DNA from: Narcine bancroftii
Taxonomy: Eukaryota
Direction: 5' to 3'
Length of the DNA: 64,000 bases
Assembly (NCBI RefSeq): GCF_036971445.1
Contig: NC_091473.1
Coordinates: 250,914,001-250,978,000 of the forward strand
The position numbers and the translations under genes are program-made. The notes below the pieces were generated by a model. That model saw only the letters and a list, made by a program, of their open reading frames with translations. It did not search any database and was not told the DNA's origin. Positions 2,889-63,351 of this stretch are shown here, piece by piece. Within the stretch, counting starts at the first letter, position 1. Each line of letters begins with the position of its first letter.

Positions 2889-2985
2889 ATGGAGGTAGCG
2901 TGGGCTGAATTCACCCACCAGAAACAACCCAGTTATAAGGTTACCATCGCTCTGCTGCTTCTCATCTCTGTTGACCTCTCATCAG
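2889..2985 (+). CDS. Gene 1 leader (signal peptide) exon
   Basis: ATG 2889, MEVAWAEFTHQKQPSYKVTIALLLLISVDLSS(G). Hydrophobic core, then a CAG|GTAAAT donor in phase 1 matching the V exons. Conserved at 37045 and 57301. Confidence 0.8.
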
Positions 2986-3239
2986 GTAAATCATTATATT
3001 TTCATAAACAATGTTCTGTAGCCTTATTCTTAGCTGTTGTTTAGAATCATTCATTTGGGCCATGGTTTTTTTTTAATGTCGGAAGCTGACAAAAGGTAGA
3101 AACATCTGTGTCACAGCCTGCACTGAGTACTGAGTGAAAGATAACTCAATCACAGCCTTGCAGGTTCCTGCACTGACTTCCAGCAGTCGTTGTGGCAGAT
3201 TTATGAGCAGATAATCTGCAATCTCCCTCAAAAACTACC

Positions 3240-3990
3240 CCAGAACCGGAGAAATTTGCAGAGGCCAAGAAACTCAGTTCCATCAGAGACCGGTTCAGAC
3301 AAAGAGAGAAACTGAAAGCAACGTGGAACAGCCACAGAACGAAATTCCGTGGAGAGGAAAGGCAGGATTTCTTCCAAGTCCAGTCGAAGTGGCCACAGTA
3401 CAGAAGCAGAACATTGCCGGAAATCTGCAATAAAAGCAGATCAGGAGAGAAATAGCCTGCAGAGAGAAATCATATTGAGTTTGGATTATTTCCATTAATA
3501 TTTCCATTATTAACAACTCTTTGACAGTATAATCCTTAAAACTTTGTCTCCCTTCCTGGAGACTTGGACACCCAGCCCGAATTGTCACTGGCAGATCAGT
3601 GGCTTGGGACGTTCAAGGTTCCGTGGAAATGGTGTCACTGTTGAGACGCAATCAACCACGATCGAATACCCATTATTCCAAACGCTTCACACCTGCAGAA
3701 CCCCTCCAGCGCTTGCCAAGCCAACTATTTTCATGGTGAGACAGAATAGTCCCAGTTGCAGTCACTCTCCATTAAACCGTGAAAGGTCACACCTCCCCTT
3801 TCCCTCCATCTCCACCGTGGCGAGTCTCCTGTTGTACTCACCTGTGTAAGGAAAAAAGTGGGATGCTGGGAATTACATTTCAGAGGGTTGTCCTTTCCTG
3901 CCATATGGGAGGGGGATGTTTTTAATCCCTATTGGTCCACCAGTCCAGAAATGCAATGGGAGGCCAACGCACGAAGCCCCTTCATCGCCA
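3240..3990. repeat. Locus-specific intronic module X (copies ~7310-8060, 14215-14965, 18025-18635, 37390-38130, 44320-45070, 57655-58262)
   Basis: Shared core gagagaaactgaaagcaacgtggaa...gaaatagcctgcagagagaaat in 7 copies of three sequence classes. I do not recognise it as a known TE. Confidence 0.75.
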
Positions 3991-4069
3991 CCAGCCTTGT
4001 AGTTACACAGTTGAAAATTAAATGAACTAGAATTGTAGAGAGCAGAGAGTGTTGTGAGGAAATCTTGTG

Positions 4070-4990
4070 CAACTCTCGTAAAGAGTGAATACCTGTTATT
4101 TCAATCCATTCCGATTTATATACCACAACATTTTTAAAAAAATATTAAATAACAGCATAAGAAGTTTCTTGTGGATCGCAAAGTCTCCAGTGTTTCTGTG
4201 GAAAAATTAACATGGGATTACAAATTTTTGGGGGGTGGTTGGGGTGGCTACGATTACCTGATTTTAGGGAATATTCCTTAGCCGCCCACTCGAGGCTCCT
4301 CGCATCTTTATTTGAGAGAGTGAACCATCATCATGGGTTAATATAGGATGACACAGCATGATGGAGGGGAAGGCAAAAGATTTCATTTACAAAACAAATA
4401 CCAAATGAATAAATAAAAGAACAGATAACCCCATCCTAAAACATCTGGTAAAGATATGGAAGGAAATTAATGATAAGAGATTGTAATCTCACCAAAAGCA
4501 CCTAAATAAGGAGGGAGTCGGACTTGGTCAGATTTATGTAGGGAAATGGTAACATTGGTGATCATTGTCAGACTAAGATTGGTACAGTATAATTTCTTAC
4601 ACCCATTGTATCTCTATATAATAAAAATTATATAAAGGAAAATCAGAGATATCGGAAATGTGCTTCAAGTGTGGGTGAGAAATGGGTACCTTTATACACG
4701 CCACATGGACCAGCACGAAGGTGAGGCCCTTTTGGTTGGAATTATCTCATATATTAACTATAGAATACACTTCCTGCTGGATCGGGAGCTGTATTTATTG
4801 GGAAACTTAGAGGTCGTGAGCAGATCATTAACTAAATTCCAAATTAAATCTGTAGATATTGCCCTGTCAGGAGTAAAAAAAAGCTCAGCGATCACCTGGA
4901 ACTCTGAATCTCCCTTGCTCATCACTCGGTGGTCCACGGAGATGCACAACTGCCTGTCCATGGAGAAAATAACATATAAGAAATAAATAC
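4070..4990 (+). mobile_element. L1-clade ORF2 C-terminal remnant, duplicated with the V-exon unit (copies ~8100-9020, 11655-11920, 15000-15925, 38200-39125, 41757-42025, 45110-46030)
   Basis: GG-LRLPDF motif and degenerate zinc knuckle (CFKCG...GTFIHATW...VRPFW), with frameshifts and stops. Confidence 0.7.
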
Positions 4991-6492
4991 CATGCTTTTG
5001 CAACCTTATCTCAAGCCCTTTGGTGCACAGCTTTAGCACCAGCCCACAGTTCTAAAAAGCTAACAAAATGCTGAAAGGCTAACAAAATTCACAGCAGTGA
5101 AGCTCCCCGAGGAGTGGAAGTCGGGTACCTGAGGTTCTCTTTTCTTTTTCCCATTTCTCTGTTTGCCACTTTAATTGTTTTAGTTGTGGTTTAGATTTCA
5201 AAGTTCTGGGGCATGAAAGGAAGTTACAAACAAGCAGCATAATGTTGGTATCAGAGAAGTGAATTATACTAAACAAAATTGTAAATACATTAAAAATGGA
5301 TTGTTTCTTCGATGTGATATTATATTTGTTTTGGAAAAATTGAAAAATAAAATTTTCAAGAAAGACTGAGTACCTGGTGATCAGAAACTAATTGTAGCAG
5401 GTAAAATGGAATGAATAACATTCTTCAACTAGATAAACTTCAAATTAAGTATTTGTGCTTCTCGCCTGGTTGAAGGGCAGAGCTCACTTGTAGTTGAGTT
5501 TAGTTTCCCCTGCCAACGTTACTCTCTTTTCCTGGCCTTTCCCAAATAACACAATTGTGAAAACAACGACAACTTTGCTTCATCTTTGTGAAATTAAGCT
5601 TTCTTCTGACAGCAATCAAAAACTTAGGCCATCAATAATTATTGATATGCGTCGTTTCACCATTTTAATGTGCTCGATCCCCCTAACTTTCTAACCTTGC
5701 TACGCCCCAGGGGATAGTGGATGCCTGGTGCTCCCTCTAACTATATTCAACCCAATTCAAATAAATAGCCTGGATGTTTCCCTTATCCTGTAGTGTAGGG
5801 TAATTGTCGGAATGGGGTTGAACATGGTTAGAGGAATGACCAGGCCACCACTCCCTACCTACTCCTTACACTCAGAACCCACTCTTCCTGATGGAGATTG
5901 TCTGGCTCTGTGAGTGTGTCAGGGTCACAGGGATCAGGGGGATAAATAACTCTCATGGTCTTCTTGCACAAGCCCCTTTCCAGCCTGGAACTGGGCCTCA
6001 GGGAAAAAGAGGATCTGACTTAGTGTGGGAGAGACATGTGGGGAGAGAGGAGGCAAATCATTTTTTTTCATTCATTGTGATTCTCTGAGTCAGTGAGGAA
6101 TATCCAGCTGCAGATTTTCTAACTGAACTTTTTTTGGGGGGAAATGGTCTCAAGGAGCAAGTCCACCATTTGTTGCCCATCTCTGCTTGCCGCAAGAGGC
6201 TCGTGCTGAGGTCCCTGTGGAACCCCTGCAGAGATCGCATCCCTAGAACTCACCACAAGAAACAACAGACAAACATGTTGGAAAATCAGGCTGAGGCATT
6301 CTGCTTTCACTCAAACCTGAGGAACAGCTTCGATGAAATGAGAATTCACACCAGGATTAGAATATGGAAGTGCAACATGACGTGGACAAAATCATGAATC
6401 TCCATGAACGGTAGAAATGTCACAATTCTATTGCTAAATTCAGCGTGTGTGGATGCAGTGTGGGTAATTTTTCATCTTTTATGTTCCAACAG

Positions 6493-6807
6493 GTTCAACT
6501 GCAATAACTGGTCCCAAACACGTTAAGGGAGAAGAAGGACAGTCGGTCACTGTGGAATGTCGGTATGATCGGAAATACAGGGACTACAAGAAACAATGGT
6601 GTAGTGGTTATTATAATCTATCAAGTGCTGTTGTTGTTTCAACTGATCGCCCACAAAATGGAAGATCATCGATGACAGATAACAAGGCAGAGGCGATAAT
6701 GTCAGTCACCATAGACAACCTACAGAAGGAAGATGAAGGATTGTACTGGTGTGTGATCGAAAAGATAATCGATGAAAAGTTTTTGATTCACTTGCAAGTT
6801 TCTGAAG
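6493..6807 (+). CDS. Ig V-set exon, type A (gene 1 domain 1)
   Basis: ttccaacAG acceptor and G|GTATGT donor. GSTAITGPKHVKGEEGQSVTVECRYDRKYRDYKKQWC...TIDNLQKEDEGLYWC...IHLQVSE shows the GxSVTxxCxY, KxWC and DxGxYWC motifs of CD300/pIgR-type V domains. Confidence 0.93.
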
Positions 6808-9800
6808 GTATGTTGACAATTCCTCCCCATTTGGCCCAAATTTGAACATTGCACCAGTCACACCCTCCACAATCACACCCATTCCAGTCACAAACACTGG
6901 TGACATCAGCTTTTTGATCACTCCAAATCCAATTATAATTCCCTCGATGGGAAAAGTGATCATTACAGAGTGACTCCCAGGAGCATATCGAGGGAGGTCC
7001 ACATACTGCTAGAAGAGGTGGGATGGTGGGTGGAACAGGTCCGGGTGGAGGGGGGGGGTGCTTAAGTGTTTCCACGAAAGCTTATCCTGTGGTGTCATAG
7101 GATCTGCTTCCCATTCTCGCTTGAGAGGAGGAGAGGAATAGACAGTGGCAAAGCTAGGGTGGGGTGTTGGTTGCAGGAGGGAAATAATGCATTCTACAAG
7201 AGTGGTGCATTTTCAACCATTTTTTAATTCTTTAGTTCCCAAATGCAATAAAAGTCGAATCTCTTTTTCACTATTGGTTCCTTTTACTTGGAATCAATGT
7301 GGAAATAGGGTAGAACTGGAGCGATTTGCAGAGGTTGAGAAACCCAGTTCCAACAGAGACCTGCTCAGACAAAGAGAGAAACTGAAAGCAACGTGGAAGA
7401 GCAACAGAACGAAATTCCGTGGAGAGGAAAGGCAGGATTTCTTCCAGGCGCAGTCGAAGTGGCCAGAGTACAGAAGCAGAACATTGCTGGAAATTTCCAA
7501 TAAGAGCAGATCAGGAAAGAAATAGCCTGCAGAGAGAAATGTATTGAGTTCAAATTTTGTTTCCAATATTAACAACTCTTTGATAGTGTCATCCTTAAAA
7601 CATTTTCTCCTTTCCTGGAGACTTGGTGGACACCCACCCCTACTTCTCATTGGCAGATCAGTGGTTGGGGTCATTCGAGGTTCCATGGAAATGGCCTCAT
7701 ACTTGGAATGGAATCGACCACGATCGAATACCCGTTATTCCAAATACTACAGACCAGCAGAGCAGAACTGTTCCAGCGCTTGCCGAGCCAACCACTTTCA
7801 TGGCCACGCAGAATGGTCCCAATTGCAGTCACTCTCCTCTAAACCATTAAAGGTCACAACTCCCCTCTCCCTCTATCTCCACCGTGGTGAGCCCTCAGTT
7901 GCTCTCACCTGTGCATAGAAAAAATTGGGAATTGCATTTCATAGGCTGTCATTTCCTGCCATATGGGAGGGGGATTATTTTCTAATCCTTATCGACCACT
8001 AGTTCTGAAATGGAATGGGAGACCAATGCCTGAAACCCCTTCATCGCTACCAGCCTTGTGGTTATACAGTTGTAGATAAAATAAACGAGAATTGTAGAGA
8101 GGAGAAAATGTGAGGAAAACATGTGCAACTCTTGTAAAGAGTGAGTACCTGTTATTTCAATCAATTCCGATTTATGAACAACATTTTTAAAATATTAAAT
8201 GACAGCATAAGAACTTTCCTGTAGATCTCTGCGGAAAAATTGACGTGGGATTATAAATTTTGGAGGGGGGGAGCGGAAACTACGATTACCTGATTTTAGG
8301 GTAAATTCCTGAGCCGTCCAGTCGAGGTTCCTTCCATCTTTATTTGAGAGAGTGAACCACCATCATGGGTTAACATAGGACGACCTAGCACGGGAGAGGG
8401 GGAGGTGAAAGATTTCATTTACAAAACAAATACCAAATAAATAAAAGAACAGATAACCCCATCCTAAAACATCTGGTAAAGGTCTGGAAGGAAATTAATG
8501 ATTGGATCGGTAAAGAGATTGTAATCTCACCAATGCACCTTAATTCTGAGGGAGTTGGACTTGGTCAGATTTATGTAGGGAAAGTGTAACATTGGTGATC
8601 AACGCCACAATAAGATGGTACAATATAATTTCTTACACCCATTATATCTCTATATAATAAAAATTATATAAAGGAAAATCAGAGATATCGGAAATGTGCT
8701 TCAGGTGTGGGTGAAAAATGGGTACCTTTATACACTCCACATGGACCTGCCGAAGGTGAGGCCCTTTTGGTTGGAATTATCTCATATATTAACTAAAGAA
8801 CAGACTTCCCGCTGGATCGGGAGCTGTAATTATTGGGAAACCTCAAGGTCGTGGGCAGATTATTAACTAAATTCCAAATTAAATCTGTAGATATTGCCCT
8901 GTCAGGAGTAAAAAAAGCTCAGCGATCACCTGGAACTCTGAATCTCCCTTGCTCATCACTCGGTGGTCCACGGAGATGCACAACTGCCTGTCCATGGAGA
9001 AAATAACATATAAGAAATAAATACCATGCTTTTGCAACCTTATCTCAAGCCCTTTGGTGCACAGCTTTAGCACCAGCCCACAGTTCTAAAAAGCTAACAA
9101 AATGCTGAAAGGCTAACAAAATTCACAGCAGTGAAGCTCCCCGAGGAGTGGAAGTCGGGTACCTGAGGTTCTCTTTTCTTTTTCCCATTTCTCTGTTTGC
9201 CACTTTAATTGTTTTAGTTGTGGTTTAGATTTCAAAGTTCTGGGGCATGAAAGGAAGTTACAAGCAAGCAGCATAATGTTGGTATCAGAGAAGTGATTTA
9301 TACTAAACAAAATTGTAAATACATTAAAAATGGATTGTTTCTTCGATGTGATATTATATTTGTTTTGGAAAAATTGAAAAATAAAATTTTCAAGAAAGAC
9401 TGAGTACCTGGTGATCAGAAACTAATTGTAGCAGGTAAAATGGAATGAATAACATTCTTCAACTAGATAAACTTCAAATTAAGTATTTGTGCTTCTCGCC
9501 TGGTTGAAGGGCAGAGCTCACTTGTAGTTGAGTTTAGTTTCCCCTGCCAACGTTACTCTCTTTTCCTGGCCTTTCCCAAATAACACAATTGTGAAAACAA
9601 CGACAACTTTGCTTCATCTTTGTGAAATTAAGCTTTCTTCTGACAGCAATCAAAAACTTAGGCCATCAATAATTATTGATATGCGTCGTTTCACCATTTT
9701 AATGTGCTCGATCCCCCTAACTTTCTAACCTTGCTACGCCCCAGGGGATAGTGGATGCCTGGTGCTCCCTCTAACTATATTCAACCCAATTCAAATAAAT

Positions 9801-10526
9801 AGCCTGGATGTTTCCCTTATCCTGTAGTGTAGGGTAATTGTCGGAATGGGGTTGAACATGGTTAGAGGAATGACCAGGCCACCACTCCCTACCTACTCCT
9901 TACACTCAGAACCCACTCTTCCTGATGGAGATTGTCTGGCTCTGTGAGTGTGTCAGGGTCACAGGGATCAGGGGGATAAATAACTCTCATGGTCTTCTTG
10001 CACAAGCCCCTTTCCAGCCTGGAACTGGGCCTCAGGGAAAAAGAGGATCTGACTTAGTGTGGGAGAGACATGTGGGGAGAGAGGAGGCAAATCATTTTTT
10101 TTCATTCATTGTGATTCTCTGAGTCAGTGAGGAATATCCAGCTGCAGATTTTCTAACTGAACTTTTTTTGGGGGGAAATGGTCTCAAGGAGCAAGTCCAC
10201 CATTTGTTGCCCATCTCTGCTTGCCGCAAGAGGCTCGTGCTGAGGTCCCTGTGGAACCCCTGCAGAGATCGCATCCCTAGAACTCACCACAAGAAACAAC
10301 AGACAAACATGTTGGAAAATCAGGCTGAGGCATTCTGCTTTCACTCAAACCTGAGGAACAGCTTCGATGAAATGAAAATTCACACCAGGATTAGAATATT
10401 GAAGTGCAACATGACGTGAACAAAATCATGAATCTCCATGAACAGTAAAAATGCCACAGTTCTATTGCTAATTTCAGCGTGTGTGGATGCAGTGTGGGTA
10501 ATCTTTCATCTTTTACGTTCAAACAG

Positions 10527-10841
10527 GTTCAACTGCAATAACTGGTCCCAAACAAGTTAAGGGAGAAGAAGGACAGTCGGTCACTATGGAATGTCGGTAT
10601 AATCGGAAATACAGGGACTACAAGAAACAATGGTGTAGGGGTCATTATTATGTATTTAGTTCTCCTTTGGTTTCAACTGAACGCCCACAACATGGAAGAT
10701 TATCAATGACTGATAACATGGCAAAAGGGATACTGTCATTCACCATAGACAACCTACAGAAGAAAGATAAAGGAAGGTACTGGTGTGGGATCGATAAGTA
10801 TATCGATGAAAAGTTTCCCATTGATTTGGAAGTTTATGAAG
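10527..10841 (+). CDS. Ig V-set exon, type B (gene 1 domain 2)
   Basis: aaacAG acceptor, G|GTACAT donor, 315 nt open. ...ECRYNRKYRDYKKQWCRGHYYVFSSPLVST...DKGRYWCGIDKYIDEKFPIDLEVYE. Confidence 0.92.
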
Positions 10842-13397
10842 GTACATTGACAATTTCTCCTCACTCAGTCAAAATTTGAAAATTCCACCCTTGCCCCTCC
10901 CACCCTCAGCTCTGATGGTGACTCAGTCCCACATTTCCATGGCATCAAAGGGGTGGGGACTCATCAACTAGGTTTTTTGTCTCTTGGGGGGAGACAACAA
11001 CACCCCCTCGGCAGGACAGTCCCGACAGCCAACTGTTCTGCTCTTGGGTCATTCCCCCACAGCCAATTGCTCCGAGGTCAGAACCTTGCCCACACCCACT
11101 GGAACAGGTGGGACAGCAGACCTCCACCACACTACCCACCTCTGCAGTCCCACCCAGCCCAGTCCCACCCATTGGTGATATCAGCCGAGTTCTGTTCACT
11201 TCCTCAGTTATTCTCCTGATGGAAAGGCTGATCCTGAGAGAGTGAATTAGATAATCTGGGATATATTTAGCGGGTTGGGCAGCATCTTTTGTGAGAGAAA
11301 CTGGTTTAATATTTAAGAGAGATATCCTTCGTCCGATTTGGGCAAGTTTCAAGATCCAGGTGTGGGAGGAGTCATGGAGGGAAAAGAAAGGAAGCCCATT
11401 GATAATGTCATGGAGCCACTGCGTCTAACAGCATAGAACAGACCCATCAAATCCCCAGCTGTGCTCAACCCACTTCATCTGTCGCATCCTATATGAATGG
11501 TTCTAGGGCCATCTCGATATCCATTCAAGGTAAGAGTCTCTGCCATCACATTCTCAGGCAGTGCTTAAGATCCCAACCATGTTCTGGGTGAGCAAAATCT
11601 TCTCTATATCTCCTATAAAATTTTTTAATTGAACCAAAGAGCTTTGCGCTCTGGTGAGGCCCTTTTGGTTGGAATTATCTCATATATTAACTAAAGAACA
11701 GACTTCCCGCTGGATCGGGAGCTGTATTTATTGGGAAACCTCAAGGTCGTGGGCAGATTATTAACTAAATTCCAAATTAAATCTGTAGATATTGCCCTGT
11801 CAGGAGTAAAAAAAAGCTCAGCGATCACCTGGAACTCTGAATCTCCCTTGCTCATCACTCGGTGGTCCACGGAGATGCACAACTGCCTGTCCATGGAGAA
11901 AATAACATATAAGAAATAAATACCATACATTTGCAACCTTATCTCAAGCCCTTTGGTGCACAGCTTTAGCGAAAGCCCACAGTTCTAAAAAGCTAACAAA
12001 ATGCTGAAAGGCTAACAAAATTCACAGCAGTGAAGCACCTCGAGGAGTGGAAGTCGGGTACCTGAGGTTCTCTTTTCTTTTTCCCATTTCTCTGTTTGCC
12101 ACTTTAATTGTTTTAGTTGTGGTTTAGATTTCAAAGTTCTGGGGCATGAAAGGAAGTTACAAGCAAGCAGCATAGTGATGGTATCAGAGAAGTGAATTAT
12201 ACTAAACAAAATTGTAAATACATTAAAAATGGATTGTTTCTTCAGATGTGATATTACATTTATTTTGGAAAAATTGAAAAATAAAATTTTCAAGAAAAAG
12301 AATGAGTACCTGATGATCAGAAACTAATTGTAGCAGGTAAAATGGAATGAATAACATTCTTCAACTAGATAAACCGAATTAAGTATTTGTCCTTCTTGCC
12401 TGGTTGAAGGGCAGAGCTCACTTGTAGTTCAGTTTAGTTTCCCCTGCCAACGTTACTCTCCTTTCCTGGCCTTTCCCAAATAATAAAATCATGAAATCAA
12501 CGACAATTTTACTTCATCTTTGTAAAATGAAGCTTTTATCTTCCAGCAATCAAAAACTTAGGTCATCAATAATTATTGATATACGTCGTGCTCGATCCCA
12601 CAACTTTCGAACCTTGCTACGCCCCAGGGGATAGTGGATGCCTGGTGCTCCCTCTAACCATGTTCCACCCAATTACAACAAATAGTCTGGACATTGCCCA
12701 CATCCTGTAGCCAAGGATAATTGTCGGTATGGTGTTGAACATGGTAGAAGAACAACCAAGACCCCATTCCATGCCTGTTCCTTACACGCAGAACCCACAC
12801 TTCCTGTTGGAGATCGGCTGGCTCTGTGAGTGAGTCAAGGTCGGGGGAGAAAAAACTCCCATGGTCTTCTTGCACAAGCCCCATTCCAGCATGGAACTGG
12901 GCCTCAGGGAAAAAGAGGATCTGACTTAGTGTGAGAAAGACATGTGGGGAGAGAGGAGGCAAACCATTATTTTCCTTCATTGTGATTATCTGAGTCGGTG
13001 AGGAATATCCAGCTGCAGATTTTCTAACTGAAGTTTCTGGGGGAGTAAGTGGTCTCAAGGAGCAAGTCCACCATTTGTTGCCCATCTCTGCTTGCCTCAA
13101 GGGGCTCGTGCTGAGGTCCCTGTGGAACCCCTGCAGAGATCGCATCCCTAGAACTCACCACAAGAAACAACAGACAAACATGTTGGAAAATCAGGCTGAG
13201 GCATTCTGCTTTCACTCAAACTTGAGGAACAGCTTCGATGAAATGAGAATTCACACCAGGATTAGAATATGGAAGTGCAACATGACGTGGACAAAATCAT
13301 GAATCTCCATGAACGGTAGAAATGTCACAATTCTATTGCTAAATTCAGCGTGTGTGGATGCAGTGTGGGTAATTTTTCATCTTTTATGTTCCAACAG

Positions 13398-13712
13398 GTT
13401 CAACTGCAATAACTGGTCCCAAGCACGTTAAGGGAGAAGAAGGACAGTCGGTCACTGTGGAATGTCGGTATGATCGGAAATACAGGGACTACAAGAAACA
13501 ATGGTGTAGTGGTTATTATAATCTATCAAGTGCTGTTGTTGTTTCAACTGATCGCCCACAAAATGGAAGATCATCGATGACAGATAACAAGGCAGAGGCG
13601 ATAATGTCAGTCACCATAGACAACCTACAGAAGGAAGATGAAGGATTGTACTGGTGTGTGATCGAAAAGATAATCGATGAAAAGTTTTTGATTCACTTGC
13701 AAGTTTCTGAAG
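13398..13712 (+). CDS. Ig V-set exon, type A (gene 1 domain 3)
   Basis: Copy of 6493-6807 at +6905; one synonymous AAA/AAG difference seen; splice sites intact. Confidence 0.92.
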
Positions 13713-16700: not shown

Positions 16701-17431
16701 TAAATAGCCTGGATGTTTCCCTTATCCTGTAGTGTAGGGTAATTGTCGGAATGGGGTTGAACATGGTTAGAGGAATGACCAGGCCACCACTCCCTACCTA
16801 CTCCTTACACTCAGAACCCACTCTTCCTGATGGAGATTGTCTGGCTCTGTGAGTGTGTCAGGGTCACAGGGATCAGGGGGATAAATAACTCTCATGGTCT
16901 TCTTGCACAAGCCCCTTTCCAGCCTGGAACTGGGCCTCAGGGAAAAAGAGGATCTGACTTAGTGTGGGAGAGACATGTGGGGAGAGAGGAGGCAAATCAT
17001 TTTTTTTCATTCATTGTGATTCTCTGAGTCAGTGAGGAATATCCAGCTGCAGATTTTCTAACTGAACTTTTTTTGGGGGGAAATGGTCTCAAGGAGCAAG
17101 TCCACCATTTGTTGCCCATCTCTGCTTGCCGCAAGAGGCTCGTGCTGAGGTCCCTGTGGAACCCCTGCAGAGATCGCATCCCTAGAACTCACCACAAGAA
17201 ACAACAGACAAACATGTTGGAAAATCAGGCTGAGGCATTCTGCTTTCACTCAAACCTGAGGAACAGCTTCGATGAAATGAAAATTCACACCAGGATTAGA
17301 ATATTGAAGTGCAACATGACGTGAACAAAATCATGAATCTCCATGAACAGTAAAAATGCCACAGTTCTATTGCTAATTTCAGCGTGTGTGGATGCAGTGT
17401 GGGTAATCTTTCATCTTTTACGTTCAAACAG

Positions 17432-22520: not shown

Positions 22521-22583
22521 CTCACCTCATTGGCACACTTAGGTTGTAAACAATTTAGGGCCAAGGAGCAATTCCTTGGATAT

Positions 22584-23790: not shown

Positions 23791-23793
23791 TAG

Positions 23794-23899: not shown

Positions 23900-23970
23900 G
23901 TCAGTCACTCTAAGCCACAACTCTTCATTGCACAGGTTAATCACTGAATTAGGGCCATCTGAAAATGACT

Positions 23971-24650: not shown

Positions 24651-24724
24651 AAACACAATCGAATTCATCGTTGGCCACAGCCCACAAACAACACTAATTC
24701 TCCGATGGAAAGAGTGATCAAGCA

Positions 24725-25090: not shown

Positions 25091-25119
25091 TAGAATTGAT
25101 TCTATTAACTCTATTAATT

Positions 25120-51364: not shown

Positions 51365-53860
51365 TAATTTGTGATTTCACAAGGAGAAACTCAAGTCAGA
51401 AGTGTTGGTATTTTGGTGGAATAGACAAGGGAACTGGCCATAGGGGGCACTGGAAGGGAATATTGTAGTGTAGCAATGGGTGGAGTTTCAGCAAGAAATG
51501 GAGAAGGTGCAAGATAAATACACACCAAAATAAAACTATTCAAATGGAAAAATGTCACAGCTGTAGCTGACGAAGAAAGTTAAAGCCAACATCAAACCAA
51601 AAGAGATTAAGTAAAAATTAGTGGGAAGGTAAAGGATTGAGAAGTATTTTAAAACTTGCAGAAGGAACTGCTAACTAAAAAACTCATGAGGAGGGAAAAC
51701 GTGAAGTATGAAGTGGGCAAGCCAACAAAACAAAAAGATTCTTCAAGTATATACAGAGTAAAAGAGAAGCAAGAGTTGATAAAGGAACATTAGGAAATAA
51801 CACTGGAGAAATAATAACGGTAGATAAGGAGATGGCAATGGAACTAAATGAGTTTTTTTGCATCGATCCACTGTGGAAGACATGAGCAGAATGCAAGATG
51901 TTGAAGGGTATTGGGGAGGGGAAGAGAGGGCAGTTACTATTTCAAGGGAGAAAGTGACCAGAAAGCTGAATTGCCTAAGGGTAGATAAGTCCTCTGGACC
52001 AGATGGATTACACCCTTGCGTTCTAAAAGAAGTATTGGTAGAGATTGTGGAGACATTGGTAATAATCTTTCACAAATCAATGGATTGTCACATGGTCCTG
52101 GGGGACTTGAAAATCACAAAGTCATCCTACTGTTCAAGAAGTGATGTTGGCAAAATCCAACTTTGGCTGAGGTGGTAACGTAATGGAGTAGTGGCTCATT
52201 GGGAAAACCAGCCCTGCACAGTAAAAGTTGGAAAAAAAGGTAGAAAAGCAAGGCAAAGAAGTAAAATTTTAAGAAGTTGCAAGATTAAAAAGCATACGAA
52301 GAACTTGAGGATGGCTGCAAAGAAGGAAAAGAATCCAACGACAAGCAAAAAAGAGGTGAGGAAATCACCAGAATAAATAGAGGAGCTCTCGTAAATAGGA
52401 TGGACTAAGCAGTAAAGTCGGTAAGTGGCTGCAACGTCTCCCGGGGCGGTCTGGAACATTGGATTGCGGAGACTGTAAAAGAAATGCCAGCCCACATGTT
52501 CAGTATGCATAATAAAGAGGACACTGAAGGGAACAGATGCCGACAAGAAAACACTGACTCTATAATGGGAGAAGCCGCGGAGTAGGCAACGAAAGAAACA
52601 GGATCAACACGGAGCCAAGGAATGGAGCAAGATAAAGAAGATCGAGAGGAAGATCCTGCCTGACCAGGCTGTGGATGTTGAAAATCTAAATAGATAAGGC
52701 TTTCGATAAGGTGCCTCATATTAGGCTGCTAAATAAGATGAGGGCCTATGCAATTACAGAGAAGTTATTAAACTGGATAGATAAGTGGCTGATAGGTACC
52801 AAGCAAAGGGTTGAAATTAAGGGTTCTATCTCTGGATGGCTGCCTGTAACGAGTGGTGTTCTGCAGGGGTCGGTATTGGGGCCGCTGCTGTTTACAATTT
52901 ATATTGTTGATTTGGATTGTGGTATGAATGGTTTTGTGGCCAAATTTTCGGATGGCACCAAGATAGGTGGCGGAGTAGAAAGTGTAGTAGAAACCGTAAA
53001 GTTGCAGAAGGATATAGACAGATTTGGAGGCTGGGCAAAATTATGGCAGATGAGATTTAACATAGAGAAATGTACAGTTGTACATTTTGGCAGTGGAAAT
53101 AAACAGGCAGAATATTATTTGGATGGGGTGAAAATACAGACCTCGGATGTACAAAGGGACCTGGGGGTCCTTGTGCAAGGAAACCGAAAAGTTAATGACC
53201 AGGTGAAATTGGTAGTGAAGAAAGCGAGTGCTATGTTGGCCTTCATTTCAAGAGGAATAGTGTACAAGAGTAAAGAGGTGTTGATGAGGCTCAATGGGGC
53301 ACTGGTGAGACCTCATTTGGAGAACTGTGTGCAGTGTTAGGCCCTCTGTCATAGAAAGGATGTGATGTTGTTGGAGAGGGTGCAGAGGAGATTTACTAGG
53401 ATGATTCCTGGAATTGACGGGCTAATGTATGAGGAGCGTTTGGCAGTTCTTGGGTTGTATTCATTGGAGTATAGGAGAATGAGAGGAAGTCTCAGAGGCT
53501 TTTCGTATTCTGAAAGGTTTAGATAGGGTGGATGTGGGTAAGATGTTTCCCTTGGTGGGTGAATCGAGGACAAGGGGTCATAGTCTGAAAATTAGAGGTT
53601 ATCCATGTAAAACAGAGATTAGGAAGAACTTCTTTAGCCATAGGGTTGTGGGTCGGTGGAACTCACTGTTCCATACAGCGGTGGAAGCTAGATCACTGGG
53701 AGTATTGAAACAAGAAATAGACAAGTGTCTCATTAGTGAGGGCATCAAGGGATATGGGAAAACGGCCAGAAATTGGAACTAGCGTAGAGTAGCTTAGTGT
53801 AGATTTACGAAACAGACTCGATGGGCCTAGTGGCCTGCTTCTGTTCCTTGGTTTTGTGAT
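51365..53860 (+). mobile_element. CR1 LINE ORF2 (degenerate) interrupted at ~52145-52690 by an unrelated, possibly L1 5'/ORF1-like, segment
   Basis: KSSGPDGLHPCVLKEV; ORF 52711-53340 SGVLQGSVLGPLLFTIYIVDL...KFSDGTKIGG...LVRPHLENCVQ; 3' RKNFFSHRVVGRWNSL. Confidence 0.88.
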
Positions 53861-53879
53861 CCCAATTATAATTGGAAGA

Positions 53880-54910
53880 GCAAGATATATTACTAAAGCC
53901 CCTGACAATTGCAGAAATACATGATACACTAATGACATTACCAAATAATAAAGCGCAGATGGATTTCCTACAGAGTTTTCTAAGGTATTCAATAATCTAT
54001 AAATTCTGCCACTCTTAGAGGTAAAGAAACAGGTGGAAGAGACCCAGAATTTGCCTGACTCATGTAAAATGACAATAATTGCAGTCATTAGGAAAACCAG
54101 AAAAGAGCCATTGTCACCGGCTTCATGGAGACCAATATCTTTACTAAATACAGTTTATAAATAAATAGCAAAATTACCAGCAAATAGATAAATAGACTGT
54201 GTACTGAAATTAATGACACGAGATCAGACAAGATTTGTTAAAAATAAAAAAGTGGCAAACAATGTCTGTAAATTTATTAATTTAATCCATTCAGCATAAT
54301 AAATAAAACAGCTGTGGCAGGGGCTCTTGATGCAGAGAAAGCTTTTAATAATGTGGAATGGAATTATCTGTTTAAAATACTAGGAAATTCAAATTACCAG
54401 AAATAAATTATTAATTGGATAAAAGCACTGTATAATGGTTCTTTGGTAAAATAATGGTGACAAATAGATATGTTTAAGACCACTTTAAATTCAATAGATC
54501 AACAAGACATGGATGCCCATTATCACCATACGAGTTTGCTTTGGCTATTGAACCACTGACAGAGCTGATAAGAAAATAACTTACAACAAAGGGAATAAAA
54601 GTAAAAGAGGAAGAATTTAAAATTAACTTATTTGCAGATGATATTAAAGTATATTTAACAGACCCAGATACATCAATAAAAAGGTTATATACAAAATTGA
54701 AAGAATATGGGGCAATATCAGGATACAAGATGAATATCGATAAAAGTGAAGTGATGCCAATAAAAAAAGTGGATTATACAAAATGTAAAAAGGAATCCCC
54801 TTTAAAATGGCAATCACAGGCTATACATTACTTAGGTATCAGGATAGATGATAATTTAAATCATTTGTATAAATTAAATTAGCAACCATTAATAAGAAAA
54901 TACAGGAAGA
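53880..54910 (+). mobile_element. L1-clade ORF2 RT fragment
   Basis: WRPISLLNT, LDAEKAFNNVEWNYLF, GCPLSP, LFADDIKVYL. Confidence 0.85.
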
Positions 54911-56470
54911 TTTGACAATGGCTGAAAGGGAGAAGCCAGAGAGTAGTGGTGGATGATTGCTTCTCAGTCTGGATGACTGTGACTAGTGGTGTGCCTCAGG
55001 CATCGGTGCTGGGATCATTGTTGTTTGTCATCTATATCAATGATCTGGTTGACAAAGTGATAAATTGGATAAACAAGTTTGCAGATGACACTAAGATTGG
55101 AGGTGTTGTGGACAGCGAAGAAGGTTTTCAAATCTTGCAGAGGGATCTGGACCAGCTGGTAGAATGGACTGAAAATTGGCAGATGAAATTAAATGCAGAC
55201 AGGTATGAGGTGTTGTCTTTTGGAGGGACATACATAGAAAGGACATAAACAGTGAATGGTCGGTCTCTGAGGAATCCAGCAGAACAGAGGGATCTGGAAA
55301 TGCAGATACTGAATTCCCTAAAAGTGTCATCACATGAGAATAGGTCTGCAAATAGAGATTTTGGCATATTGGCCTTCATTAATCAAAGTATTGAGTGCAG
55401 GAGTTGGGATGTTGCATTAAATTTGTATAAGACATTAGTGAGGCCAAATTTGGAGAATTGTGTGCAGCTTTGGTCACATATCACAGGAAGGATATCAATA
55501 AGATAGAAAGTGTGGAGATAAAATTTATAGGATGTTGCTCAGACATCACGGACTAAGATACAAAGTAAGGTGAAACAGGTTAGAACTTTATTCCCTGCAG
55601 CATAGAAGAATGAGGAGAGGTTTGATAGAAGTATATAAATTATGATAGTAAATATAGAGAAGCTTTTTCCACTGAGAGTAGGTGAGATACAAACCAGAGG
55701 ATATAGGTTTAGGGTGAAAGAGGAAAGCTTTACAGGGAACATTAGTGGAAACCTCTTCATACAGAAAGTGGTGGGAGGTGCTAGTTAAAGAGGTGAATGC
55801 AGGCTCATTTATGAAGAACGTGGACAGGTACATAGGTGGGGGGTTTGTGGAGGCCCATTGAGTGAGAGCAGGTCAGTGGAACTAGACAAACACAAATGGT
55901 TCGGCACAGACTGGAATGGCTGAAGGGGGCTGATACAGTGCTGTAATGTTCTATGGTTCTAAGGTTTTATGGGAGGTTGAGGCTTTATAAGGCACAGTTG
56001 AGACCTCCCCTGGAGTATTGGGAGCTCTTCACTGAAAAGCTGATGTTGGGAAGGGTTCAGGGGAAGTTCTCATGGATGATTCGGGGAATGAAAGGGTTAT
56101 CATATGAGGAGTGTTTAACAGCTCTCATCCTGTACTCATTGGAATTTAGGAGAATAAGCGTTCTCATTGAAACATTTCAAATGTTGTGAGGTGTGGTCAA
56201 AGTAAATGTAGAAAGGATTTTTCCCCATGGTGGGAAAGTCCAGGACCTCACTTCAGGATTGAAGGGCCTCCACTTAGAACAGAGGTGCAGAGGAATTTCT
56301 TCAGCCAGAGGGTGATAAATCAGTGGAATTTGTTGCCACCGGCACTGGGTGTATTTAGAGCTGAGATTGGTAGGTTCTTCATTACCCATGGCAGTGGGGC
56401 TGAGTGGGAACATGGATCAGCTCATGATAAAATGGTGGGGAAGACTCAATGGGCTGGAGCCTATTCCTGA
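54911..56470 (+). mobile_element. CR1 fragments (paralog of 501-2060)
   Basis: ORF 54946-55248 is nearly identical to ORF 537-839. Confidence 0.9.
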
Positions 56471-57300
56471 TACTTTGCCTCCAGTCTGTTCTCGTCTTAC
56501 ACAAAGGGGTGTGAGCTGAAGTGGAGATTAACCCAAGGCACACCCCGTCACAATGCAGGGCAGAGGGGTGAATGAGACAGGGTCGAACAATGCAGGGGAT
56601 AGAATGGTGTAGGCTGGCCAGGAATGGGCACAATTCTCAGCTGGGGGTGGGGGGCCTAACTCAGTCATGATGATAGATTCACCAACACACTATACAGCAC
56701 AGTAACAAGCCCTTCCAGCCAACAAGCCCATCCTGCCCAAATAACCCAATTCACCTACAGCCCCAGTACATTTTGAAGGGTGGAGTTCAACCAGAGGACC
56801 TGGAGGATACCCACGCAGAGATGGGGAGACCATACAAGCTGCTTACAGACAGCACCGGATTCCAACCCCAGTTGCTGTAATGGTGATGTGTTAACCATGA
56901 CAATAAATGTCCCACCCTAGAATTCCGGGACAAGTGGGTGAGTATGCGTTTGGGAGGGTACATAATGTGGTCACAGTCTGTCCGCGGTACATGAAGACAA
57001 GGCTTGGGGTGGAGAATGCAGTGCCAGTCCAGTGGACAAGCTCCTCCTGAAGGACACCGGTCTTGTGGAGCACCTGGGAGCTCCACTCATCCAGGAAAGA
57101 GGTGGGAAAACCAGAACAATTATGACTGGGGCAATGAAATTTCTGGTGCTGTGTAGAAGTGAGTTACCAGATAGTTCAGACAGCACAGGAAGTCCATGAC
57201 ATGTCAAGAAAGGAACTGGGCTATGTGTCTGCTGTGTGAAAAGGGAAGTAGCCAACCTAAAGAGAAGTCACGGACCCAGCTGGTGTAATACAGCTGAAAG

Positions 57301-57397
57301 ATGGAGGTAGCGTGGGCTGAATTCACCCACCAGAAACAACCCAGTTATAAGGTTACCATCGCTCTGCTGCTTCTCATCTCTGTTGACCTCTCATCAG
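57301..57397 (+). CDS. Gene 3 leader exon
   Basis: Same peptide as the gene 1 leader; CAG|GTAAAT donor. Confidence 0.8.
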
Positions 57398-59049
57398 GTA
57401 AATCATTATATTTTCATAAACAAGGTTCTGTAGCCTTATTCTTAGCTGTTGTTTAGAATCATTCATTTGGGCCATGGTTTTTTTTTAATGTCGGAAGCTG
57501 ACAAATGGTAGAAACATCTGTGTCACAGCCTGCACTGAGCACTGAGTGAAAGATAACTCAATCACAGCCTTGCAGGTTCCTGCACTGACTTCCAGCAGTC
57601 GTTGTGGCAGATTTATGAGCAGATAATCTGCAATCTCCCTCAATAACTACCCCAGAACCGGAGAAATTTGCAGAGGCCAAGAAACTCAGTTCCATCAGAG
57701 ACCGGTTCAGACAAAGAGAGAAACTGAAAGCAACGTGGAACAGCCACAGAACGAAATTTCGTGGAGAGGAAAGGCAGGATTTCTTTCAAGCCCAGTCGAA
57801 GTGGCCACAGTACAGAAGCAGAACATTGCTGGAAATCTGCAATAAGAGCAGATCAGGAAAGAAATAGCCTGCAGAGAGAAATCGTATTGAGTTCGGATTT
57901 TGTTTCCATTGTTAACAACTCTTTGACAGTATAATCCTTAAAACTTTGTCTCCCTTCCTGGAGAAGTGGTGGACACCCTCCCCTAGTTGCCATTGGCAGA
58001 TGAGTGGGATGGGGACTTTCAAGGTTTCCATGGAAACAGCCAAACTATTGGGACGGAATCGTCCACGATCGAAAACCCAGTATTACAAACGCTTCACACC
58101 GGCAGAGCAGAACCCTACCAACGATTGCCAAGCTGCCCACTTTCATAGCCAGGCACAATAGTCCCAACCTTTAAAGTTCAGAACTCCCCTTTCTCTCCAT
58201 CTCCACTGCGGCAAGTCTCCAGTTGCTCTCACCTGCACAGAGAAAAACGTGGGATGCTGGGAACTTTGCTAGGACCCAGGGGATAGTGGATGCCTGCTGC
58301 TCCCTCTAACCACGTTCCATCCAATTACAACAAATAGCCTGGACGTTGCCCACATCCTGTAGCCAAGGATAATTGTCAGTATGGGGTTGAACATGGTAGA
58401 GGAACGACCAAGACCCCATTCCTTGCCTGTTCCTGACACGCAGAACCCACACTTCCTGTTGGAGATCGGCTGGCTCTGTGAGTGAGTCAAGGTCAGGGGG
58501 AGAAAAATCTCCCATGGTCTTCTTGTACAAGCCCCATTCCAGCATGGAACTGGGCCTCAGGGAAAAAGAGGATCTGACTTAGTGTGAGAGAGACATGTTG
58601 GGAGAGAGGAGGCAAACCATTATTTTCCTTCATTGTGATTATCTGAGTTGGTGAGGAATATCCAGCTGCAGATTTTCTAACTGAAGTTTCTGGGGGGGAA
58701 GTGGTCTCAAGGAGCAAGTCCACCATTTGTTGCCCATCTCTGCTTGCCGCAAGGGGCTCGTGCTGAGGTCCCTGTGGAAACCCTGCAGAGATCGCATCCC
58801 TAGAACTCACCACAAGAAACAACAGACAAACATGTTGGAAAATCAGGCTGAGGCATTCTGCTTTCACTCAAACTTGAGGAACAGCTTCGATGAAATGAGA
58901 ATTCACACCAGGATTAGAATATTGAAGTGCAACATGACGTGGACAAAATCATGAATCTCCATGAACGGTAGAAATGCCACAGTTCTATTGCTAAATTCAG
59001 CTTGTGTGGATGCAGTGTGGGTAATCTTTCATCTTTTATGTTCCAACAG

Positions 59050-59364
59050 GTTCAATTGCAATAACTGGTCCCAAACACGTTAAGGGAGAAGAAGGACAGT
59101 CGATCACTATGGAATGTCGGTATGATCGGAAATACAGGGACTACAAGAAACAATGGTGTAGTGGTTATTTATATCTATCAAGGGCTGTTGTGGTTTCTTC
59201 TGATCGACCACAACATGGAAGATCATCGATGACTGATAACAAGACAGAGGCGATAATGTCATTCACCATAGACAACCTACAGAAGGAAGATGAAGGATGG
59301 TACTGGTGTGTGATCGAAAAAATGATAAATGAAAAGATTTCATTTTACTTACAAGTTTCTGAAG
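59050..59364 (+). CDS. Ig V-set exon, type C (gene 3 single domain)
   Basis: Same protein as 19423-19737; splice sites intact. Confidence 0.92.
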
Positions 59365-62200
59365 GTACGTTGACAAGTTCTCCTCACTTGGCCAAAATTT
59401 GAAAATTCCACCCTTGCCCCTCCCACCCTCAGCTCTGATGGTGACTCAGTCCCACATTTCCATGGCATCAAAGGGGTGGGGACTCATCAACTAGGTTTTT
59501 TGTCTCTTGGGGGGAGACAACAACACCCCCTCGGCAGGACAGTCCCGACAGCCAACTGTTCTGCTCTTGAGTTATTCCCCCACAGCCAATTGCTCCGAGA
59601 TCAGAATCTTGCCCACACCCACTGGAACAGGTGGGACTGCAGACCTCCACCAGCTCACACTACCCACCTCTGCAGTCCCACCCAGCCCATTCCCACCCAT
59701 TGGTGATATCAGCCGAGTTCTGTTCACTTCCTCAGTTATTCTCCTGATGGAAAGGCTGATCCTGAGAGAGTGAAGTAGATAATCTGGGATATATTTAGCG
59801 GGTTGGGCAGCATCTTTAGTGGGAGAAACTGGGTTAATATTTAAGAGAGATATCCTTCGTCCGATTTGGGCAAGTTTCAAGATCCAGGTGTGGGAGGAGT
59901 CATGGAGGGAAAAGAAAGGAAGCCCATTGATAATGTCATGGAGCCACTGCCTCTAACAGCATAGAACAGACCCATCAGATCACCAGCTGTGCTCAACCCA
60001 TTTCATCTGTCACATCCTATATGAATGGTTCCAGGCCCATTTCGATATCCATTCAAGGTAAGAGTCTCTGCCATCACCTTCTCAGGCAGTGCTTAAGATC
60101 CCAACCATGTTCTGGGTGAGCAAAATCTTCTCTATATCTCCTGGAAACATTTTACATCGAAACAAAAGGCTTTGCGCTCTGGTTATAATGACCTCTGCTG
60201 CATAGAACATTTTTACTGCTATCAATCCTACCTCTCCCCCATGTAATGTTGCACATCCCATTCAGATCAGCTCTGAGTTTTCACCTCCACAAGGAAGACA
60301 ACCCAGCCTCTCCATCCTATCCTCACAATGGAAATGTTCCTATGCATGCTGTGTGACCTCCATCATTTTGGTCATTACTACATTCACACATCTGCAGTGT
60401 TCCACTGTTATCACTCTACGCCTACTTCCCCACTGTCTTATTCTCTCAGCCCCTTTACAATGACCATCCACTCCCCCTCCCTCAGCCTTGTTCTTTTTCT
60501 ACCCCTCTCCCACACTCTCCATTTCTATCTCTCCCCCTTCAGGTGCTCCAGCTTCCCAAAAGGTGGAATTGGAGCCCCAGACCTGTTCCTTTCAGTACTG
60601 GCAGTGGACACTTCAGGCTTCCTCCCTCATCTTGGGTCATTGAGCCAGTGGGAGCTGAGGTGGGGACCAGCAGCAAGAATCCAGTCTGCGGGCTGAGGAA
60701 TGTCCCAGCAGTGGGCAGCCTTTGGTGGAGAGGCTAATCGTAGCCTTGACTGCTTCATGGATGTCCCCAGATCTAGGATGCTTTCAAGGACTCCTTCACC
60801 AGATGCACAGTTGCTCATCCAGGGAGGTTTCCCTGGACAAAAACTTGACTCACAATAGGAAACTACACAAACAGTGGTCTCTTTGTGGAAAGTTTCCAGA
60901 AATTATTTCCCAGAAATCTCCAGAATATGCACCCCCCAATCAACCCCAACCTCTGAAACACATCCATCTACTGTTCAATCATTCCCTGATCCACCCTGGG
61001 CCTCAACACTTCTGGGTCAGTTCTCCAGAATCCTCCATTCCTTGAACTTTAAAACATTTAACTCTACTCTAAATATCTCTCATCAGCTTTTCTCCTGCAC
61101 TCTCAGGCAGTGAGAATTCCAATTGTTCACTGCCCTCCAAAGGAAGAAAGGTCAGCCTCAGCACACCTCAAATTTAAATTACCTGCTCCTAACTTTGTTT
61201 GCCTTTACTGGCTCCTTTTATTCCGGTCTCATTTGAATCACCTCCCATTCTTCTGAATTCAAAGGAATTCAGCCCCATCTAATTCGTCTCTCTGAATGGA
61301 ACAACCATTACAGGAAGGATGTGGAAGATATGGAGAAGGTGCAGAGGAGATTTACCAGGATGTTGCCTGGATTGGGAAACGAGTCTGATGAGGCGAGCTT
61401 AGTGGAACTGGGACTTTCCTCTTTGGAGCGTACAACGTCGAGAGGAGACTTGATTGAGGTCTACAAGAATATGAGAAGAATAGATAGGGTGGATGGCCAG
61501 CGCCTTTTCTCCAGGGCAGAAATAGCAAACACCAGATGACATATGTACAAAGTGAAGGGAGGGTAGCAAACACCAGATGACATATGTACAAAGTGAAGGG
61601 AGGGATGTTTAGGGGAGACATCAGGGGCATTTGAAAGATGCTTAGACAGGTACATGGATGGAAGAAAAATAGAGGGAACGGGGTAGCGTGGGTTTAGTTT
61701 TTTCAAAGGAATATATGAATCGGCACAACATCAAGGTCCAAAGGGCCTGTACTGTTCTATGTAGCTCTCTCCCATCCCAGCAGTTGGCCTGTTGAACTTC
61801 CTTTGGGCTACCTCCAATGCTACTCTGTCTTTTTGGTGAAGGGTTCCAACACTGTACACACAGTTCCTGGTGAGGTTTCACCAGTACCATGTGCAATTGC
61901 GACAAACCCTCCCTACACTTAAACTCCATCCCCTTTCCAATGACTGTGGCCTTCCCAGCTTCAGGTTGGACCAGCCTGTTAGACTTTGGCGAGTCGTGCA
62001 CTAGGACACTGCGATCTCTCTGTAACTCACTCACTCATGAGCAGCCTCACTCTGTTAAGACAATAATCTGCCATATTTTCGCCACAATCATTCCATTCAC
62101 ATCAACGTTCTCGTCTTGATGTGCTCTTCCATCCACCCTCACCTCATTGGCACACTTAGGTTGTAAACAATTTAGGGCCAAGGAGCAATTCCTTGGATAT

Positions 62201-62364
62201 TCCAAAACTTGCATCCTCTCAGCCGGAAATGGTATCCTTCATTCTAGCTCCATATTTTCCATGTGACGGCCACTCTTCATTCTCCAAAACTTGCATCCTC
62301 TCAGCCAGAAAACGTCCCCTTCATTCTAGCTCCATATTTTCCATGTGACGGCCAGTCTTCAATC
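62201..62364 (+). repeat. ~82-bp minisatellite, 2 units
   Basis: Unit starts at 62201 and 62283; same unit as 22584-22910. Confidence 0.9.
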
Positions 62365-63245
62365 CGTGCCGGGACACTTGCTCAGTATCTCAAGGTTCAA
62401 GCTTCCTTTTGTCGTCATAGTAACACATAAAAATATAATTGACAGGATATGTTTCCATTTTTGTTGGCTGCAAGGTAAACAAATAGTTGCCACGAGCCTT
62501 GCCCAGCTCCCCTAAAGAGAAGCAAAAGAGAATTCCTTCAGACACACCGAGTGGCCGTGGATTCGCCTCCCGTGCTCCCACAACTTCTGCCATCACACAG
62601 GACTCCTGCCTGATTCATCAACAACCCGAGCCCAGATCCAAACCTCCAATACGATCAGGAAGCTGTAAGTGCCTCAGGCCCTTCTATCCTCAGCACCATC
62701 TCAAATCCCGGTTCGAATACCTGGTGCCCCTGAGCCGGTGTCCAGCAGCCCACAGCCTATGTGGATCTCCCAGTGGTCAACCACTTCAATTCTGCATCCC
62801 ATCCCCATGCTGACATGACCATGGTCTCGTGCTGTCAAACAAGTCCATCAGTCAACTGGTGAAACAACACTCAATTTTCCATCTCCAACCAGATGGCATT
62901 AACGACTTCTCCAGTTTCCGCTTGCCCACTCCCCGCTCTCCCTCCCTTCCTTTTCACCTCATCTTCTTTCCTCCATTTCCCCACCCTTCCCTCTCTATTC
63001 ACAGACCCATCCCTCCTCCCCACGTTAGCTGCTCTGCCCTCCCTCCCTTATATCTTATGCCTGTGGGGCTGTGCTCCTCCCATTGCCCCTGCCCTTCCCC
63101 CATCACTTTATTGAGGCGCCTGCTTACATTTTGTCATCTCTTGATGCTGGGCTCAAGAGATACATTGGCGATGTATCTTTATCCTTACTCTAAAAGGGAT
63201 CTATTTGACCTTTTGAGTTTCTCCAGCTTTGTGTTTTGACCTTAG

Positions 63246-63351
63246 ATTCTTCATCCATTGTAACCTCTGGGCCGAGCACATTCAGCATGAAAACAGCAGG
63301 TGCTGAGACCTCCACAGCAGCCTTGCAGACCTCTTCATCGCCTCAAACCTG
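63246..63351 (+). CDS. Ser/Thr-rich stalk exon (gene 3)
   Basis: Paralog of 23794-23899 (DSSSIVTSGPST...PQT) with the same acceptor and donor. Confidence 0.68.

Follow-up and report, generated by a model that had tools for sequence, protein, structure and literature searches.

The window analysed here is a 64,000 nucleotide (nt) stretch of the genome of Narcine bancroftii, the lesser electric ray (GCF_036971445.1, NC_091473.1:250,914,001-250,978,000, forward strand). It contains what are probably two adjacent, expressed receptor genes of the batoid CD300/pIgR-like (skate MDIR-type) kind, here called gene I and gene II, which would form an activating/inhibitory pair. The MDIR-type placement rests on the described features of that family, the reference MDIR proteins having been compared by description only. 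Both genes are already predicted in RefSeq, under the name "polymeric immunoglobulin receptor-like", which misleads in a lineage where a true pIgR is not known (PMC4016189). When domain A of the window was used as a phmmer query against 1.84 billion representatives, a 561-residue protein with five matching stretches was found; this is XP_069798182.1, "polymeric immunoglobulin receptor-like isoform X4" of Narcine bancroftii.

Gene I (2889-30909) codes for a leader and five V-type immunoglobulin (Ig) domains, ordered A-B-A-B-C; these are followed by a Ser/Thr stalk, by a membrane segment that contains Arg and Lys, and by a short tail. Its isoform X1 (P0151, XP_069798179.1, 662 amino acids) maps at 100% to the leader, the five V exons and the stalk, membrane and tail exons, which are:

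2889-2985, + strand: leader exon, 97 nt, phase 1, with ATG and signal peptide; 100% to residues 1-33 of XP_069798179.1
6493-6807, + strand: V exon A1, in a recombinant unit with B-type intron to about 6170-6300 and A-type thereafter
10527-10841, + strand: V exon B1
13398-13712, + strand: V exon A2, 1 nt off A1 and A3
17432-17746, + strand: V exon B2, nucleotide-identical to B1 and B3
19423-19737, + strand: V exon C1
23794-23899, + strand: stalk exon, Ser/Thr-rich, phase 1 to 2
29272-29379, + strand: membrane exon, present once in the window; hydrophobic segment containing Arg and Lys
30807-30909, + strand: tail exon, short, with stop codon and no Tyr motif, single copy in the window

Gene II begins with a second leader at 37045, runs through B-A-A' and is then spliced across 11 kb to C and a stalk, its RefSeq model having been matched exon by exon. 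The predicted protein (P0161, XP_069798184.1, 594 amino acids) has the second leader, then B, A, A' and C exactly as translated from the window, then the second stalk. It continues past the window with a plain membrane segment and a tail that carries sequences (IVYTTI, NTYMNL, VTYSAV) resembling immunoreceptor tyrosine-based inhibitory and switch motifs (ITIM and ITSM); this tail is absent from the window. The exons of gene II within the window are:

37045-37141, + strand: leader exon (MEVGWAQ...), 97 nt, phase 1; 100% to residues 1-33 of XP_069798184.1
40630-40944, + strand: V exon B3
43502-43816, + strand: V exon A3
47526-47840, + strand: V exon A', an A-like exon with the flanks of a C-position unit
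59050-59364, + strand: V exon C3, nucleotide-identical to C1, with deep coverage in RNA-like runs
63246-63351, + strand: stalk exon; RNA joint from 59364 to 63246 (GT..AG)

Six-frame translation into stop-to-stop open reading frames (ORFs), together with tblastn, reveals exactly nine V-type exons in the window, all on the + strand. A preliminary description of this DNA had given the same order of leaders, V types and stalks, and the ORFs and tblastn confirmed it. They likewise bore out its counts (three A, three B, two C and one A'), all nine V exons proving intact, and its shared leader, found as three copies of one exon (97 nt each, at 2889, 37045 and 57301), while its end coordinate of 63351 is the exact end of the second stalk exon. 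Each V exon is 315 nt long, is bounded by an AG acceptor and a GT donor, and is in phase 1-1, the first two bases completing one codon and the last base opening the next. Since every V exon is such a cassette, its gain, loss, reordering or skipping keeps the reading frame.

Copies of the same type are nucleotide-identical (B1=B2=B3, A1=A3, C1=C3), the sole exception being the one difference in A2. Between types the identity is 84-92% for nucleotides and 66-84% for amino acids: A and B share 87% and 72%, and A and C 92% and 84%, respectively. A' stands at 96.5% and 92% to A. All four types match the Pfam V-set family (PF07686) above its gathering score, with E-values of about 1e-11 to 1e-13. 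V-set gives the best score for each type (44-49 bits), and I-set reaches 23-26 bits, about its threshold of 23.7. The nine-exon pattern and its repeats are not attributable to chance (E-values down to 0).

The differences between types are concentrated in the C-C'-C'' region, the D-E region, and the F-G loop together with strand G, strands and loops being assigned by alignment to the first domain (D1) of pIgR and not from a structure. The segment from the first Cys to the Trp, equivalent to complementarity-determining region 1, is nearly invariant. Nei-Gojobori ratios of nonsynonymous to synonymous change are 1.46 for A versus B, 1.49 for A' versus B, 1.02 for B versus C and 0.56 for A versus C. 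Positive selection between the types is not claimed, the ratios resting on only 6-10 synonymous changes per pair (about 6-7 for A/B and A'/B, whose ratios do not in themselves depart from 1). Each V domain has three Cys, namely the canonical pair and the "QWC" Cys of the extra CD300/pIgR disulfide, whose C' partner is missing; one apparently unpaired Cys per Narcine domain amounts to five in gene I. Both Cys of the extra pair are present in the stingray homologues P0002 and P0013, and neither in the skate proteins P0003 and P0157.

The two genes differ in their signalling ends. The membrane segment of gene I, LWAVLRWLLFKALLFCTVSI, contains both Arg and Lys and is followed by a cytoplasmic tail of 33 residues free of tyrosine motifs, and we take gene I from these features to be of the activating type. 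Gene II, as modelled in RefSeq, is of the inhibitory type. As in paired receptors, the neighbouring genes have ectodomains that are nearly identical and signalling modules that are opposed (an Arg/Lys membrane segment versus an ITIM tail), and these opposite ends are the main functional point that was absent from the preliminary description. The charged membrane segment of gene I would couple to an adaptor and the ITIM tail of gene II would recruit a phosphatase, and the two products would bind one common ligand with opposite outcomes. Among the skate, stingray and sawfish homologues, which have 1-4 V domains, the charged motif in the membrane segment (LRW.LF) is seen again, as is the ITIM tail. 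For skate homologues of Leucoraja and Amblyraja the identity to gene I is 57% (P0003 versus P0001) and 56% (P0157 versus P0151). Some ray homologue models (P0156 of Rhinoraja, and P0011) have both types of membrane segment, or a V domain after the membrane segment; these appear to be neighbouring paired genes merged by automatic annotation.

Self-BLAST of the window gave 51 direct matches of at least 300 nt at 84-99.4% identity, the longest of 10.5 kb. The repeat units measure 2.1-4.0 kb at 88-100% identity, in keeping with the units of 2-4 kb with shared intron modules already described. Common to all nine is a module of ~1.1 kb made up of the proximal intron (95-100% identical) and the exon. 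Across the nine units the 400 nt of intron ahead of each V exon are 95-100% identical; exons of different type diverge by 13%, and their proximal introns by 2-5%. Three long blocks stand out:

6500-10884 = 13405-17789, + strand: tandem block of the A-B pair, at least 99.9% identical, 4.4 kb, period 6905
8860-15860 = 38950-45950, + strand: block shared by gene I and gene II, ~99.8% identical (15 mismatches in 7 kb), flanks ~10% divergent
18157-23975 = about 57780-63427, + strand: C-stalk block, ~99.8% identical, 5.8 kb, ~8 mismatches and three indels

The C-stalk block holds the intron before C, the C exon and the stalk exon, and ends 75 nt past the latter. The 1.8 kb ahead of the two A-B copies is 83-96% identical. 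Between the leader introns of the two genes (3600-6300 in gene I) identity is ~99.5%, though they lead to an A exon in gene I and to a B exon in gene II. Over 5600-6299 the A1 unit matches the B1 unit without a single mismatch, and from about 6266 it is the same as the A2 unit, so that the switch point lies 200-320 nt upstream of exon A1. From -780 to -400, A1 sides with the B units (100% identity, against only 87% to A2/A3), while exon A1 is the same as A3. Along the repeats, identity is mosaic and sharp-edged.

As read from these alignments, exon type is uncoupled from intron type, which is expected from repeated unequal crossover or gene conversion within the common module when the exon types themselves stay separate. 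The earlier proposal that recent unequal crossover has altered the number and order of domains is upheld by the 4.4, 7 and 5.8 kb blocks, the A1 switch point and the uncoupling of exon from intron; with gene conversion admitted as a second route, we regard it as well supported. The exchange is very recent, its tracts resembling each other as closely as alleles do. Within the ~1.1-kb module, unequal crossover and gene conversion probably duplicated the A-B pair of gene I and moved cassettes between genes I and II. The ectodomain-coding part was probably kept near-identical by such exchange as far as 75 nt beyond the stalk exon, and the signalling exons remained distinct. The locus displays, base by base, how paired receptors keep their ectodomains matched while domain number varies: the exons are frame-neutral, the intron module is common and the exchange tracts end just past the stalk exon.

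Two features lie downstream of the gene I stalk. The first is a V-exon relic at 23992-24095, which keeps the last ~50 nt of the exon with the downstream flank and matches 47787-47890 at 87%. Genes I and II cease to be nearly identical right before it, at 23975/63427, and the relic is probably a recombination scar. The second is an open Pro/Thr-rich frame of 150 codons at 24393-24842 (+ strand), without a Pfam match; the stretch ahead of it, 24055-24465, resembles the module found 3' of the B, C and A' exons. This frame could be a relic or an alternative mucin-like stalk exon, or could be due to chance.

Four sequencing runs (X1, X5, X6 and X7) were compared with positions 57340-63339 in the form of Logan contigs, X1 and X7 being DNA, and X5 and X6 guessed to be RNA. 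In X5 and X6 the bins of the C exon have depths of 459-4928, compared with about 10-55 in the introns, while the DNA run X1 is flat there; it is on this account that X5 and X6 are taken as RNA. The GT..AG joint from C to the stalk (59364->63246) is present in X5 at a depth of 895 and in X6 at 154, and is not found in the DNA runs X1 and X7. One X5 contig at the C acceptor extends upstream into TGATTCACTTGCAAGTTTCTGA, which is the 3' end of an A or A' exon and not of the leader, B or C; hence a splice from A or A' to C exists. The A'-to-C3 splice of gene II fits the RNA contigs, without being proved by them.

In the intron between C and the stalk, the stretches 61140-61740 and 62340-63340 show word depths from thousands to above 100,000 in DNA and RNA-like runs alike, with many loose ends, and are high-copy interspersed repeats. 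Of the words sampled, 31% occur in DNA run X7, whose organism label is a different one; among its contigs some have no differences and others 7-15 per ~220 nt, its source being either a close relative or another individual carrying the locus.

The preliminary description had divided these exons among three tandem paralogs with 5, 3 and 1 V domains. Its three leader groups are there; RefSeq, however, gives two genes, with five and four V domains. The third leader lies inside the 11-kb intron of gene II, where the following features occur in sequence:

51700-54390, + strand: fragment of a long interspersed nuclear element (LINE) with RVT_1, occupying the expected stalk position of the 3-V gene
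54390-57300, + strand: third copy of the upstream module (LINE relic and promoter-proximal region), 91-99% identical to 1-2888
57301-57397, + strand: third leader copy, 97 nt, phase 1, inside the 11-kb intron of gene II; coding sequence equal to the gene I leader

Past A' a likeness of ~90% to the region after C in gene I continues to 51214, and is followed by a LINE reverse transcriptase (RVT_1, E 2.5e-14). Within the window no homologue of a stalk, membrane or tail exon was found after A', either with tblastn or with blastn at word size 7, and sensitive blastn gives a total of two stalk exons, one membrane exon and one tail exon. Consequently the 3-V gene (L-B-A-A') has no 3' end of its own, and the RNA contigs show an A- or A'-to-C junction; a separate 3-V gene is not supported. 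The second and third genes of the preliminary description are one RefSeq gene, because P0161 contains the L-B-A-A'-C-stalk exons exactly. RVT_1 fragments are also seen at 216-1093, 34670-35005 and 54580-55503, being copies that travel with the promoter/leader module in each duplication; others are at 52690-53337, in the expected stalk position just mentioned, and at 25589-26302 (- strand).

The strongest alternative to two genes is a set of three: a 5-V activating gene, a 3-V gene (L-B-A-A') that ends after A' and would yield a secreted or truncated product, and a 1-V inhibitory gene starting from the third leader. The third leader has the same coding sequence as leader 1, with ATG and GT donor intact, and its 2.9-kb upstream module is 91-99% identical to those of genes I and II. 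Single-V inhibitory homologues do exist (e.g. P0067 of Pristis), and the leader-C arrangement resembles a crossover product at a 510-bp module (leader intron 3242-3754 / pre-C intron 18027-18539). On the other side, the run of RefSeq accessions 184-190 covers gene II isoforms X1-X6, none of which starts at the third leader. Among the joints listed from the Logan contigs over 57340-63339 there is no leader-to-C joint, even though C itself is covered very deeply, and the single junction contig that reaches the C acceptor derives from an A or A' exon. The sole RNA-like contig over the leader intron carries an 8-nt deletion and two substitutions typical of the first leader of gene II, and the 3-V gene would be without stalk, membrane and tail exons. 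On this balance three genes seem unlikely. The third leader may possibly serve as an alternative first exon.

In some RefSeq isoforms (P0153, P0155 and P0165) a B exon is left midway, after ...KKQW, and the transcript resumes where the next V exon begins; this implies a GC donor inside the exon and a product with a broken domain. Such mid-exon joins may come from cryptic splicing, or they may be artefacts of aligning exons that are identical.

Several observations weigh against two adjacent, expressed genes with opposite signalling ends. The membrane and ITIM exons of gene II lie outside the window and are known from the RefSeq model P0161 alone, and the exon-skipping isoforms of RefSeq could in part be multi-mapping artefacts among identical exons. 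The 22-letter loose end of the X5 contig is equal for A and A', the last 28 nt of these exons being identical, and C1 is the same as C3. Logan contigs drop rare forms, so that the absence of a leader-to-C joint proves nothing, and with the third leader and its upstream module intact a separate 1-V transcript is possible. Finally, and puzzlingly, the contigs of run X1 are no deeper in the blocks assembled twice (word depth 13-14) than a copy-specific contig (15.2). Contig word depth is declared by its tool not to be a copy number, and we rejected it as a measure of copy number.

This depth comparison, with the same proviso, and the allele-like identity (99.8-100%) of the 4.4-5.8 kb blocks are what an assembly artefact would have in its favour, that is, near-identical blocks falsely duplicated or haplotypes placed in tandem, with real domain counts that are lower. 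We hold this to be very improbable. The mosaic copies switch sharply to flanks that are 4-17% divergent and provide anchors for long reads, genes I and II end in different signalling exons, and the DNA contigs reproduce the third leader copy's own variants with no differences. In addition, the RefSeq five- and four-domain models follow the same structure, and the B-to-A order of A-B-A-B is also present in gene II. The domain counts of five in gene I and four in gene II are those of the assembly, with evidence from contigs and RefSeq models.

As regards relatives, the preliminary assignment to the CD300/pIgR/MDIR-type receptors is supported. The best single-domain match in PDB is CLM-1/CD300f [75 bits; E 4.6e-20], followed by CD300a/c, individual pIgR domains [up to 37 bits], NKp44 [33 bits] and TREM2 [31 bits]; pIgR has the best whole-chain E-value [1.4e-32], summed over five domains. 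A domain tree unites the four Narcine types in a single clade (100/99) and places the skate, stingray and tetrapod pIgR domains each in clades of their own. It follows that each batoid lineage acquired, or homogenised, its multi-domain ectodomains on its own, and that gene I is not a pIgR orthologue. The search with the skate homologue P0003 returned no protein named MDIR.

Least credible of all is that gene I is the true pIgR of the electric ray, carrying polymeric IgM across epithelia: the RefSeq name, the whole-chain E-value, the five tandem V-type domains and a role left vacant by a 2014 survey that found no pIgR in sharks (PMC4016189) speak for it, but we reject it on the tree, in which the Narcine clade stands apart from tetrapod pIgR D1-D3, on the Arg/Lys membrane segment and on a 33-residue tail in place of the long sorting tail of pIgR, the lead of CD300f over the best pIgR domain (75 versus 37 bits) and a paired ITIM partner typical of leukocyte regulatory receptors also speaking against it.

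Beyond the two-gene pair itself, a bolder and tentative view, which we consider possible though rather doubtful, is of the array as a live accordion. Haplotypes and individuals of Narcine would vary in the number and order of their domains, the third leader would give a 1-V isoform, and one locus would produce receptors of both signalling types, graded in length and avidity, without somatic rearrangement. The 400-nt intron module would be the recombination substrate, and the unpaired Cys might perhaps serve in covalent capture of ligand or in multimerisation. The locus is in any event suited to testing the polymorphism of germline domain number in an early-branching jawed vertebrate.

The closest known system is that of the skate MDIRs, reportedly described in 2006 from cDNA and without a genomic picture. 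The MDIRs of the clearnose skate, in the work of Cannon that year, are said to have one to six Ig domains drawn from few subfamilies in varied combinations, some members with a charged membrane residue and others with ITIMs. Their domains are reportedly related to those of CD300/CMRF35, pIgR, TREM and NKp44, and in the original description were said to be of the I- or C2-set. The Narcine locus agrees in its variable count of Ig domains from few types (A-B-A-B-C and B-A-A'-C from four exon types), in having a charged-membrane form (29272-29379, in the window) beside an ITIM form (RefSeq model P0161, outside the window), and in its domain matches to CD300, pIgR, NKp44 and TREM2 in PDB. It differs in that Narcine belongs to the Torpediniformes and the clearnose skate to the Rajiformes, and in that the Narcine domain types, by the domain tree, arose within the Narcine lineage. 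The skate MDIRs are a multigene family of cartilaginous fish, for which PMC3031540 is the source. The cassette phase, the nucleotide-identical copies common to an activating and an inhibitory gene, the exchange blocks and the leader duplicate inside an intron, which are resolved here, supply a genomic basis for receptors of the MDIR type.

The CD300/CMRF35-like receptors (CD300A/C, CD300f = CLM-1) are similar in having clustered activating and inhibitory members, with ITIM tails or adaptor-coupling charged membrane segments. A CD300 protein, however, has one V domain only, in which there is a second disulfide (C-C'), whereas the Narcine receptors have four or five V domains in tandem, each of which keeps one Cys of that extra pair. 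Like pIgR, they have V-type domains from one and the same branch of the superfamily, several in tandem (five in gene I, as in mammals), but there is no domain orthology, and the charged membrane segment, the short tail and the inhibitory partner gene set gene I apart. Among FcR-like and KIR-like paired receptors the shuffling of domains along with birth-and-death is the accepted mode of evolution (PMC2413239). The likeness to these lies in activating and inhibitory genes with near-identical ectodomains, and in inter- and intragenic recombination that shifts gene and domain number in a species-specific manner. Those receptors use domains of the C2/I type, while in Narcine the exchanged cassettes are V-type and the exchange is very recent, with kilobase tracts that are 99.8-100% identical.

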